Origin: Geosiphon pyriformis uo1
Taxonomy: Eukaryota > Fungi > Glomeromycota
Length of the DNA: 64,000 nucleotides
NCBI GenBank assembly: GCA_016748015.1
Contig: JAAOMT010000512.1
Span: 778,719-842,718 of the forward strand
Reading direction: 5' to 3'
Shown in pieces: positions 39,015 to 44,300 of this stretch (positions within the stretch are counted from its first letter, which is position 1; each line of letters begins with the position of its first letter). The position numbers and the translations under genes were made by a program. The notes under the pieces are model-generated. The model was given only the letters and a program-made list of their open reading frames with translations. It was not told the origin of the DNA and did not search any database.

Positions 39015-39570
39015 TATATTTATTAAAAATTCGATTTTAAATAAATAAAAAAACCACCAAAATATATAAGGATATTTAACAATAATTTAATATTTTTGTT
39101 TGAATACATGTATATAATTTAACTTTGTTAAAAATTAAATTAAGTAATTTAATAAATATATAAAATTTAAATATAATAATATTAAATCAATTAAAAAACT
39201 TTATTGCAATAACATTAATAGAAAATTAAATAAAGCTTAACATTATGCAAAAAAAAAAGACTTGCAATATTTAAAGATAACAAGTCAAATAAACCTATTT
39301 AATACATTTTATTTAAAAGTTATGAAGAGAAACTGTGACACTATTGTGGCTTTTCGGCCCTGCGCTATGACATATACTAATTATATTGGAAAATAATCAA
39401 AAGGAATATAAATAACTTCGCAGGCCCGCAATAAATTAAATCTTACTGAATTAGTCAAAGTCGTCATGAAAACTATAAATTTACAAATTTGTTACAGCTC
39501 TGAGCATTAAAATAGTAGCAAGCAATGCATGTATTATCATAATCCCTACTAGTTATTAGATATTCCTCGA

Positions 39571-40705
39571 TCAAAAATCGTCACCTTGATTCGCAAAAAA
39601 GTGAAGGTAGGCAATGACTAAGAAAATAATTAAAAGTATTATTAACTCATCGAAATAAAAATATAAAAATGATTCAATCTCATTTTCAAAATTTACTTGT
39701 TATATATACGAAGGCTCCACCACCAATACTCATAACCATAGCAATGTATGTTATCTAAAGCAAAAAAAAGTTGCGATTATAGATCATTCCGTTTGAGGCT
39801 TAAGAACCAATAATTTAGAAACACAATTACCGCTCCAGAATGAGCAAGAACATAGGGCAAGCCTATACCATTGGTAATTTGGAAACAAAGGTAGTGATGG
39901 ATGAATATACCAAAATTATTTCCTTCGAACGAAATGAATAAATATTTGTCTTAGCTATCATTACAAAATCCTGTAACAAGCAAGACCGCCGTTAAAAATT
40001 GACTAAAATCTTTGAAGCCACTGTTTTAATGGAAAATCCAATAAGTCATTTCACAAGTTTTTATTTGAATACACAATTGTGTTATATTGAATACTTACTT
40101 GGGGGTGTTATCTGACAAAATCTCTTCATTACCAGCACGAGATGAAAATATTATATTTGGTATTGGTGCAAGAACAAATATAGCCACTTTGATGTGAAAT
40201 AAAGTGTTATTAAAACAATAAAAAAAAGAAAAAATTCACCAAACAAGAAATGAGACCTCACCAACAAATAAAGGCCACCAATTACTGGAAATTATCCGAA
40301 ATTTTGTAGGCACACATGTTAAAGATCGTCGTGAAAAAGCATCAGACCAAGAAAAATCGTATTATCATACCTATATAGAGCACAGGACAATATTACAAGT
40401 AAAAACCCAACAGCAAGTACAAATGCCAAAGTGATGATGCTGGGTACAAAAAGATTCTTTTATTATTGGTTCAAATGAGTAAGATAAAAGCCAAAAGCCA
40501 GGGGTGAGAACTCTTAGCCACTTGAAGAAAATTTCCATATCATCTTTGTTATTTTAAAGACTAAATCATCTTGTCAAGCAACTCACGCTAGAAATTCGAT
40601 TAGTATTGGTTAGTTAGTAGTCATCCTTCAGAAAAGTGCAAGGTTTACAAAAGCGAACAGCCTGGGTTATAAACCAAAGATTCGCTTACTTTTTAAGCCT
40701 GCCAT
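39571..40705 (-). CDS. VPS55: Vacuolar protein sorting 55 (LEPROT family), 9 exons including a predicted 1-nt exon
   Basis: Spliced product MAGLKTIITLAFVLAVGFLLVILSCALYSNWWPLFVVAIFVLAPIPN...LPYVLAHSGAI...AYLHFFANQGDDF; all introns GT-AG. Not visible in the ORF track. Confidence 0.9.
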
Positions 40706-41329
40706 TTACCAAAAACTATATATTATACAATTCACAAATCAAAAGTCGACTAACGAACAACTGTTAAAAAGTGTCAGTTCTGGTGTATCAATTATCAATT
40801 TAGATTTCTTGAATTGGCCGATTGGTCGAACCCGGCATCATTTCATGTTTCATCAAAAACTGTTAAACGAGTATGAAACTATTCGCGTTACACCCACTTG
40901 GACAGCATTTCCCATTGTAATATTGTCACTGTACACAACGTGGTCAAGATGGTCATAAAACCAATATGTTCGATGAATAACGAGATATCAAAGCATTGCT
41001 GGCAACTTCCCCCGTCCTTAATCTTCAATCTACACTCATTATTTGTGTTCGAGCCCCTAACCCCTTTTTCTCCCTCCCCGAAGGTTTACGTCCTTAGTAC
41101 AACGGAACCTAAGGAGCCTGTTTAACAAAGTGAATGAGGGCAAAAATTCACTGCGGGACAGTTTATTATCAACTTTCTCATCCTCTTCGTTAAAATCTCC
41201 TTCGAATTTCAGGCTACTTTTATTTTACATGTTCAAAAAACAAACTATAGACCTTTCGACTTTCCCAATATAAAATTGCACTTCTGAGTACTTGGTACCC
41301 ACCTTTATTGAAAAAGGGGCATAAAGGAC

Positions 41330-44300
41330 ATGGAATATAATTACAAACCCTATCAAGCACCTTACTCTCCTGCTTCAACTACCTTACCGGCACCCAGCCG
41401 AACCCCGCCTCTTAACACTCACTCTCCACCTAATCCGTCTACAGCCGTCTTTAATGCAATATTACAAAATAATGTTGGACTTTTAGGTTCCATCCTTGGA
41501 AAAAATTCTTTCAATTTGAATAATCTACGAGATTACGATGGCAAGACACCTTTAATGGTCGCTGCCTGTGAGAATTGTCCCGATGTTTTAGCATTCCTTG
41601 TCGAAAATCGAAGTGTAAACCTTGATTTACAAGGTATTTTTGCTTTTGAACATGCCCTTAGTTTTGGAGCTTTAAATATCCATGATATAAATTTAATTTA
41701 TATGTTATTTTTCCAAGATAATGAAGGTGAGTCGGCCCTGTATCAAGCTGCATCCAACGGGAGTCTACAAGCTGTCGACATATTGATTGCAGCAGGCGCA
41801 TATATAGAATGTGGAAATAAGGTGATATTTTATAACCTTTGTCATATGGTATCAATTTTTGTTCACTAGCTAATTATTCTAATTTATAGGAAAATATTAC
41901 ACCCCTGATCATAGCTGCCTTTAAGGGGAATGCTGACATTTGTCGCACACTCATAGACCAAGGTGGAGCAAATGTCAATCAACAAGATAATTCAAATAAA
42001 ACTGCATTGATTTTGGCAGCATATGAAGACCATATTGCTACTGTCGAGGTATTGCTTGCTAGAGGCGCAAAAATAAACATGACAGATCAGGTATGAGCAC
42101 ATATGTTAGAATAAGATTCCAATGTTTTTGTATTAATATCATTATATTCTCACTTTGTAGTATGGATGGACTGCTCTAATGCTGGCTGCTTACACAAATC
42201 GATATTATGTATGTAGAACCCTCCTGGTTCATAATGCAAATAAGGATATAGCCACAAGCAATGGGAAAACTGCATCCATACTTGCCCGTGACGCCGGGTA
42301 TTTCGATTTAGCCGACATGATTGAACAATTTGTTCCTGGAGGTCAAGTCTCTCCCAGATATACATATGGAATGGATATAAACTCAACATCAATTCCTCAA
42401 TATCACGAACCATCATACCGGGAAGATATACCACATCACAATGTCCCTCGGAATCATAATTACACTGATCCTTATTTTCCTAAGGGTCATATGATGCCTC
42501 TTGAACAGGACAAAAGACGTCTTACACTTCAACCTAAAAATCTCGAAAGAAGACGATCCCAATATTATAGTCTCAATGTTAATAAAATTGGTCCTCATGC
42601 TGGTGAATATAGAACAGCCCCTCATGTCAAACAAGATATGAGACCTAGGGAAGATGGAACACCTTGGGTTATTTTCTCATGGATAGTCACTGCATGTTTT
42701 TGTAATCCGTGTCTTTCAAGCATCGGAAAGATGAAAGATCCAAATATTCGACAAGCTTGGCGGGAGAAATTTGCATTATGTTTTATCATATTATGTATAT
42801 CGGGTTTCATGGGTTTTTTAACTTTTGGTTTGTCTACGATTGCATGTCAAAGGAAGGTACCACTTTACCCCCAAGATATTCTTCGATTATATGGACCACA
42901 AGTTACGGGACGAAAAGTGCACATAGTCCGTGGAAAAATTTATGACACTGGGAACTTTTTCCAATTTGGAAGCCATCGTCCTATTGCACCATTCAGCGAT
43001 GAAGATTTGAAACCTATCATTGAACCCTTGTTTGGTACTGAGATCTCGAGCTATTTTCCACCAAATTATAAAGCTATTGGATGTTCTAGCTCACCTAAGA
43101 ACACTGTCTGCAACCAAAATGACAATAGATATCATTGTCATACCTCCCTAGCTTCACGAAAGTTACTTGAAACCCTCTCTATGAATGAATTTGTCGGTTT
43201 CACATGGGACAATATTACAAACGGAGACAGAAAATTATTTGTATATAATGACGCTGTATATGACTTGACCGAATACCTTGATACCCAAAATTCAGATTTC
43301 TGGCTCGGCGGCCCAGATACCACTAAATGGCTAGCTTCGCTGGTTGGGGAAGATGCAACAAAAAAAATTCTCCATAGTACTAATACGACACGAATCGCAC
43401 AATGCTTTGAGCATTTCTTGGTGGGAAAAATTGATGGAACAACAATTGGGTGTTTTGCCACGAATTTGATATTGATTGTGATGACTGTAGTTTTCACCGG
43501 AATCACCTTGATCAAATTTGTTTCTGCTATTGCTTTTGATTGGTTCCTTTCTTGGCAATTGGGTAAAATTTCTAAAAAACCAAAAACAAACGATCAAATA
43601 ACGCGTATTCTCTTGCTGGTAACATGTTATTCGGAGGGCGTAGAATCTATGCAAACCACGCTTGATTCTTTAGCTGGCACAGATTATTCAGATGAACACA
43701 AGCTTCTTTTCGTAATCGCAGATGGTGACATTACGGGTTCAGATAATGATCGCTCAACTCCACAAATATGTAAAGATTTACTTGAGCCTCAATTCCCTGA
43801 ACTAGACGAACCTGAATTTGTATCCTATTCCGCTATAGGGGATGGCAAGAAGCAGCATAATATGGCCCAAGTATACACAGGTTATTACAATGTCAATAAT
43901 CATAGGGTTCCTATGTGTTTGATTATCAAGTCTGGTACACCTGAAGAAAGAAAAGGAGCTAAAGCTGGTAATCGAGGGAAACGTGACTCTCAGCTGATTC
44001 TGATGTCATGGTTAAGTCATGTTTATTTTAATGAACGTATGTCGCGGTTGGAATTTGATCTCTTTCAAAAAGTGCGTGGTTTAACTGGGGTGACGCCTGA
44101 CAAATACGAGATGGTTTTAATGGTGGACGCTGATACTTTGGTGAAACCCGACAGTGTGAGCCATATGGTTGCCGCTATGGAGCGTGATCCAAAAGTAATG
44201 GGACTTTGTGGCGAAACAAAAATTGCCAATAAAACTGCTAGTTGGGTTTCCATGATTCAGGTAATGGTCATTCTCTGATCCCTTTATGAAAATTTTAAAT

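Follow-up and report, generated by a model that had tools for sequence, protein, structure and literature searches.

A probable single-nucleotide exon in the VPS55 gene of Geosiphon pyriformis and other early-diverging fungi

How can a first coding exon that ends one base into a codon be joined to a next large exon that supplies only one further base of that codon? The 5′ end of VPS55 in the fungus Geosiphon pyriformis poses this question in a 64,000-nucleotide stretch of DNA, here called the window, whose positions are used throughout. An earlier note, made from the letters of the window, had proposed that a lone C between the two exons is itself an exon. Exons of one nucleotide (nt) represent the lower limit of exon definition by the spliceosome, and very few have been documented. 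Here we report that the C at position 40587 is very probably a real single-nucleotide exon of Geosiphon VPS55, a reading that we base on the frame of the gene and on the comparison of genomes. We further find that this exon appears to be ancient and conserved across early-diverging fungi, in at least two fungal phyla.

One base restores the VPS55 reading frame

VPS55 is encoded on the minus strand. The coding part of its first exon (40690–40705; 16 nt, ATGGCAGGCTTAAAAA, the ATG plus 13 nt) encodes MAGLK and the A that opens a Thr codon, ends in phase 1 and is followed by the donor GTAAGC. The next large exon, exon 3 (40371–40439; 69 nt), lies behind a CAG acceptor at 40442–40440 and from 40439 reads C ATC ATC ACT, which is the third base of the Thr codon followed by IITLAFVLAVGFLLVILSCALY, the first transmembrane helix (TM1); its ends were placed from sequence and homology. 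Because the frame of exon 3 is closed by an upstream in-frame stop at 40462–40460 and there is no ATG inside the exon, an upstream exon is required and exon 3 has to be entered by splicing. When exon 1 is spliced straight to 40439, translation stops after 20 codons; when the C at 40587 is included, as the second base of Thr codon 6 (A/C/C, with slashes marking splice junctions here and below), the frame is restored and the product is MAGLKTIITLAFVLAVGFLLVILSCALY. The predicted mRNA would read ...TTAAAAACCATCATC... with the microexon and ...AAAAACATCATC, with no extra C, if it were skipped. On the minus strand, every coordinate and base that the earlier note had given for exon 1, the C, both introns and exon 3 is correct, and the frameshift and its repair are as it had described them.

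The C is embedded in strong splicing signals. Intron 1 (40588–40689; 102 nt, phase 1), read from the sequence as GTAAGC...TAG, carries a cluster of overlapping branch-site motifs (TACTAAC, CTAAC and TACTAAT; 40599–40619) that places the branch A 12–26 nt 5′ of the TAG, and TACTAACTAACCAATACTAATCGAATTTCTAG lies directly 5′ of the C. Intron 2 (40440–40586; 147 nt, phase 2), likewise read from the sequence as GTGAGT...CAG, opens with the donor GTGAGT at 40581–40586. An AG/C/GT arrangement with a branch site upstream of the AG, TACTAAC...TAG/C/GTGAGT, is thereby found at 40619–40581. When both strands of the 64-kb window are counted, the core motif YAGNGTRAGT has a single match, the 40587 site, with 0.91 matches expected in 128 kb. 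The composite motif TACTAAC-N(5-35)-YAGNGTRAGT occurs only twice in the whole 128-Mb genome (six times for the reversed-pattern control), so that the probability of its falling by chance in a given 250-nt stretch is roughly 1e-5 or less.

The second genomic match to the composite motif, at G000:C729:83188-83215 on the minus strand (locus L024), reads ...GTTACTAACATTTAGGCATCTAG/G/GTGAGT and could be another single-nucleotide exon or a chance occurrence. Within VPS55, the other internal exons that would restore the frame (7, 10, 13, 19, 22, 25 or 52 nt), and a lone A at 40512 with the donor GTTCTC taken as a single-nucleotide exon, were rejected for their N-termini foreign to the family and their weak sites.

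VPS55 is an expressed, single-copy gene that is otherwise intact

The earlier note had named the gene as VPS55, and profile scores agree: the exon at 40438–40373 alone (22 residues) scores 27.3 bits on positions 1–22 of the Pfam Vps55 profile (PF04133), above the cut-off of 24.6 bits. Exon 5 scores 16.8 bits on profile positions 32–52, and the Geosiphon protein aligns with annotated VPS55 proteins. A phmmer search with a 30-residue piece of exon 5 against 1.84 billion representatives returned only three long unrelated proteins.

Splicing of the downstream part can be followed in RNA, using the spliced contigs of one public transcriptome run that contains the locus. One contig of 376 nt, with a word depth of 66.7, links 40262/40186, 40099/40020, 39964/39861, 39831/39754, 39697/39617 and 39550/39472, all with GT..AG introns on the minus strand. 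These joints delimit exon 4 (40262–40284, 23 nt; joint 40186/40262), exon 5 (40099–40186, 88 nt), exon 6 (39965–40020, 56 nt; joints 40020/40099 and 39861/39964, the latter with its cut shifted by +1), exon 7 (39831–39862, 32 nt), exon 8 (39697–39754, 58 nt) and exon 9 (39550–39617), in which the coding sequence stops with TGA at 39573–39571. An intron in the 3′ untranslated region (UTR; 39473–39549, 77 nt; joint 39472/39550) starts 21 nt past the stop codon. Seven introns of 75–102 nt, six in the coding region and one in the 3′ UTR, were counted as RNA-confirmed; the joints listed for the contig make six pairs, the last being that of the 3′ UTR.

The RNA contig extends no further 5′ than 40282 and lacks the first two bases of exon 4; no contig lies on 40337–41171. 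This gap speaks neither for nor against the microexon, as contigs cannot show absence. The break near 40282 may stem from 3′ bias or from variable 5′ splicing that made the assembly graph branch. Together, the RNA-supported exons, exon 1, the C and exon 3 give a VPS55 of 129 amino acids with the C-terminus ...FFANQGDDF. VPS55 is expressed and, according to a profile search of the genome, present in a single copy; a second PF04133 match (contig C718) is AT-rich low-complexity sequence and was set aside as neither a paralogue nor a retrocopy.

VPS55 and an ankyrin-repeat gene, which in Geosiphon is fused to chitin synthase, form a head-to-head pair about 625 bp apart (40705–41330 of the window). 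The same RNA run confirms three introns of this neighbour (41630–41713, 41820–41887 and 42089–42158). An ankyrin gene likewise lies upstream of VPS55 on the opposite strand in Funneliformis geosporum (L011:710-1501), and the divergent pair seems to be conserved within Glomeromycotina.

The AG/C/GT island recurs in seven other fungal genomes

The earlier note had suggested looking for AG-N-GT conservation in other fungi, and we found it in seven relatives: two other Glomeromycotina, two species of Mucor, Umbelopsis, Calcarisporiella and Coemansia, whose loci were fetched via protein identifiers. In each of these seven independently assembled genomes, which represent four lineages, a phase-1 exon 1 is followed by an AG/C/GT island and by an exon 3 that opens with one base, and the three pieces make a Thr codon. 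In Rhizophagus (Glomus) cerebriforme, exon 1 ends ...AAAAA before the donor GTAAAA, the island is TTAG/C/GTAAGC and exon 3 begins G ATT ATT. The corresponding island and exon 3 are CTAG/C/GTACGG and C ATC ATA in Funneliformis geosporum, ATAG/C/GTAAGG and C ATT ATT in Mucor mucedo, ATAG/C/GTAAGA and T ATT ATT in Mucor plumbeus, ATAG/C/GTAAGT and C ATC ATA in Umbelopsis isabellina, AAAG/C/GTAAAT and A ATC ATC in Calcarisporiella thermophila, and TTAG/C/GTAAGG and A ATT GTG in Coemansia reversa.

With Geosiphon included, exon 1 ends in A and in phase 1 in all eight genomes, the lone base is always C and the split codon is ACC, ACG, ACT or ACA, each of which encodes Thr. The two flanking introns measure 57–195 nt and 66–167 nt, and outside the island no similarity among them is visible. 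Exon 1 is 16 nt long in five of the seven relatives and 19 nt, also in phase 1, in Calcarisporiella and Coemansia; the C falls in codon 6 in Geosiphon and, after the 19 nt, in codon 7 in the latter two. The donor behind the C has G at position +5 in seven of the eight species. A full GTRAGT is present in Geosiphon (GTGAGT) and, among the seven relatives, only in Umbelopsis (GTAAGT); four relatives match GTRAG but not the last base, and neither form fits the donor of Funneliformis (GTACGG) or that of Calcarisporiella (GTAAAT).

A product with the Thr is recorded for other fungi. A Logan cDNA contig from a Mucoromycota-like fungus (L014) runs contiguously through ATGGCAGGACTTCGAACTATCATT and gives the N-terminus MAGLRTII, and the annotated M. 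mucedo protein carries the Thr, which the genomic sequence of this species yields only with the extra C. The N-terminus of M. mucedo and of the Logan cDNA is MAGLRTIIALAF; that of Agaricomycetes is MA(H)AG[LI]KTVILLSF, and Rhodosporidiobolus, Phaffia and Verticillium have AGLKT[IV][IV]. MAGLKTII is, as the earlier note had stated, typical of the family, with AGLKTVI in Agaricomycetes and MAGLRTII in Mucor and the cDNA. Because these N-termini are shared by Basidiomycota, Ascomycota, Mucor and the cDNA, exon 1 with the following Thr represents the ancestral N-terminus of VPS55.

Public gene models replace or lose the lone base

A profile search with one exon per row, built from exons 3–6 because exons 7–9 were misplaced when aligned to a yeast protein, returned the NCBI model G9A89_019113 (P0146, Geosiphon pyriformis, 136 amino acids), which is identical to the gene in the window if a 22-nt exon takes the place of the C. 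This exon (40522–40543, minus strand; ATGATATGG) has the acceptor aacaaag and the donor GTGGCT. The model gains NDMEIFF and changes the Thr to Asn (MAGLKNDMEIFFNIITLAF), and its predicted product is 21 nt longer, ...TTAAAAATGATATGG. If the deposited model were right, the stretch 40543–40522 would link exons 1 and 3, and the C island would be unused or serve a minor isoform. Such an exon keeps the frame, has canonical AG and GT and is compatible with the RNA contigs, none of which covers this region. However, it inserts seven residues and replaces the Thr in the N-terminus, for which fungi otherwise show MAGL[KR]T[IV]I, its donor is weak and its acceptor lacks a pyrimidine tract. No relative requires a 22-nt exon, whereas the AG/C/GT island is present in seven of seven, and artefacts of other kinds occur here in other public models. 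An exon of one nucleotide is beyond what aligners and gene predictors can place, so a frame-saving substitute is the artefact to be expected. We consider it improbable that the deposited model is right.

The artefacts in other species are varied. The public models of R. cerebriforme, Coemansia, Gongronella and Phycomyces have R or S in place of the Thr, as if they had borrowed the G of the GT donor. That of M. plumbeus reads through an intron, and the N-termini are invented or truncated in the models of M. circinelloides, Umbelopsis, Rhizopus stolonifer, Calcarisporiella and Funneliformis. Faulty VPS55 N-termini in many models of early-diverging fungi (P0163, P0181, P0161, P0182, P0168, P0169, P0162, P0164, P0167, P0165 and P0146) can all be traced to an unannotated single-nucleotide exon. 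Its recognition would provide a corrected VPS55 N-terminus for many public fungal annotations, which now show R or S for Thr, a spurious insertion or a truncation.

Assembly error and alternative starts

A missing base in the assembly, either a sixth A in exon 1 or a CC opening exon 3, would turn the two introns (102 and 147 nt) and the C into one ordinary 250-nt phase-1 intron, like that of Basidiomycota. Grifola, Rhodosporidiobolus and a GC-rich metagenome contig (L008) do have a single intron at exactly A/CC, and exon 1 of Geosiphon terminates in a run of five A. Yet seven further assemblies, produced by different groups, need the same single base, and exon 1 of Mucor and Umbelopsis ends in AGAA, with no long homopolymer. 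Because the same layout is found in eight independent assemblies, a one-base error shared by all of them is impossible. The RNA contigs near the locus match the genome almost free of indels, a sixth A would produce Asn rather than the conserved Thr, and an intron of 250 nt would be out of line with the introns of 75–102 nt elsewhere in the gene. Moreover, the conserved AG/C/GT island would be left unexplained. An error of this kind is very improbable.

Least probable of all is another start, such as the ATG at 40538 with a 40522/40439 junction (MEIFFNIITLAF), or a decaying 5′ end with an unconserved N-terminus: this ATG has a donor at 40521 in frame and suits the RNA contigs, none of which lies over the 5′ exons, but exon 1 encodes MAGLK, identical to relatives, in a gene that is expressed, single copy and otherwise intact.

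Loss of either flanking intron can mimic intron sliding

With the C read as an exon, the intron-poor VPS55 genes of other fungi can be compared with Geosiphon position by position. The lone intron of Grifola, Rhodosporidiobolus and the L008 contig, all basidiomycete-type genes, matches the position of the upstream, phase-1 intron exactly. In L004/L009, a fungus from a soil metagenome, only the downstream, phase-2 intron is present (...AAAAC/GTACGC...TAG/A ATC). Of the sequences compared, those of Mucoromycota come nearest to its protein, and this first intron of its gene sits exactly at the position of Geosiphon intron 2. Neither intron is present in five ascomycete or yeast loci (Verticillium, Protomyces, L007 and two yeasts).

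In the accepted fungal tree, Zoopagomycota, to which Coemansia belongs, branches before Mucoromycota and Dikarya. As Coemansia has the exon and its lineage branches first, parsimony would place the single-nucleotide exon already in the common ancestor of Zoopagomycota and Mucoromycota plus Dikarya. The downstream intron would then have been lost in Basidiomycota, the upstream one in one Mucoromycota-like soil lineage and both in the sampled ascomycetes, and exact loss of one or both introns would account for the intron-poor fungal genes. Lineages that kept different introns would now resemble a single intron that has slid by one base. VPS55 offers a worked case of how an intron can seem to slide when one or the other of two neighbouring introns is lost and, if this history is true, differential loss of flanking introns is a concrete mechanism for such apparent sliding.

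VPS55 also contains another near-adjacent pair of intron positions. In L004/L009 and in L007, an extra intron follows ...LSF, two or three codons inside TM1; it is in phase 2 in L009 (TTCGT/GTACTC) and in phase 0 in L007 (TTC/GTATGC).

A proposed stepwise route for splicing around one base

The introns of Geosiphon VPS55 are short and are probably recognized by intron definition. An AG and a GT that are one base apart could not be engaged together, because the two sites cannot be occupied simultaneously, and the introns would have to be removed stepwise. Were intron 1 removed first, AAAAAC/GTGAGT would be left as a usable donor; were intron 2 removed first, TAG/CC would be left as a usable acceptor. 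From the sequence we infer that inclusion of the microexon would be constitutive and that either order of removal could apply. The strong signals, namely the three overlapping branch-site motifs and GTGAGT, may offset the absence of exon sequence. In both orders, the microexon base would become position −1 of the donor, which would have to lean on its intronic part; the G present at +5 in all but one of the eight species is consistent with such reliance.

Discussion

A lone C that is needed for the frame, flanked by splice sites in eight of eight genomes, makes VPS55 a natural and tractable system, accessible in Mucor, Phycomyces and Rhizophagus, for the use of splice sites one base apart. Zero-nucleotide recursive splice sites (AG/GT), known from Drosophila and vertebrates, offer one likeness: a 3′ splice site is followed by a regenerated 5′ splice site, and the two are used in successive steps. 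The Geosiphon site differs in that one base lies between AG and GT, is needed for coding and would be kept in the mRNA, and the introns on either side are 102 and 147 nt and not very long.

The closest parallel is in the same gene of plants. The earlier note mentioned a single-nucleotide exon in plant VPS55, and this exon is both real and published: Yu et al. 2022 (PMC8831610) described a conserved microexon of size 1 and phase 1 in plant VPS55-1 (their cluster 2), which sits between coding blocks of 19 and 52 nt, is followed by the donor GTRAGT and is absent from annotations, at the cost of 13 N-terminal residues in Arabidopsis. The VPS55 microexon is also present in Zygnema and has been read as arising around terrestrialisation (PMC11096116). 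In the searchable literature, we did not find a VPS55 microexon described outside plants, and word-based sequence searches yielded only fungi.

The plant and Geosiphon exons have much in common. Both lie in a Vps55-domain gene, directly before the first transmembrane helix, with size 1 and phase 1, and in both the first coding exon that precedes them is very short (16 nt in Geosiphon; 19 nt in plants, as in Calcarisporiella and Coemansia). The donor GTGAGT of Geosiphon is of the plant GTRAGT type, and in both kingdoms reference annotations miss the exon and give wrong N-termini. They differ in that the plant base is the second of codon 7 and the Geosiphon base the second of codon 6, and in that some plant isoforms or paralogues carry the microexon and others lack it, whereas Geosiphon VPS55 is single copy. 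Arabidopsis VPS55-2 contains ...MRACLHTGKLALL..., which, counted from the ancestral start, would make codon 7 a Thr codon, and the animal proteins LEPROT and LEPROTL1 begin MAG[VI]K. Given the same size and phase and the location in codons 6–7, there is a fair chance that the fungal exon is positionally homologous to the plant one. Whether the two are the same exon, already present in a shared ancestor near the eukaryote root, seems to us evenly balanced. If homology between plants and fungi is true, the exon has survived for more than 1 billion years; if its origin near the eukaryote root is true, it is the oldest known microexon, which contradicts an origin at plant terrestrialisation.

Another single-nucleotide exon, in Arabidopsis APC11, was confirmed with minigenes by Guo and Liu (2015; PMC4674806), who proposed intron definition with stepwise (recursive-like) removal of the introns. 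As in Geosiphon VPS55, one nucleotide is needed for the frame (constitutively in APC11); the gene is different, and the evidence is experimental for APC11 and comes from genome comparison for VPS55. The plant APC11 exon is base 20 of the coding sequence (blocks 19, 1 and 52). In Geosiphon, APC11 (G000:C706:824234-824337; L022:1358-1461) has a 20-nt exon (MKITIK plus CG), an 83-nt intron (GTTGAC...GTAG) and then T TGG CAA; this first intron, after base 20, coincides in position with the intron downstream of the plant microexon, which hints that Geosiphon APC11 shows the same pattern as VPS55.

Among fungi, a single-nucleotide exon has been reported in Fusarium CYP621A, in a 2026 paper that calls it the first for a fungal gene (PMC12940212), and 13 were listed in a long-read annotation of Coprinopsis cinerea (PMC12230235). 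Like the putative VPS55 exon, these are spliceosomal exons that contribute the second base of a codon and lead automatic gene models astray. They are limited to a genus or species, whereas the VPS55 exon spans Zoopagomycota and Mucoromycota and would therefore be far older.
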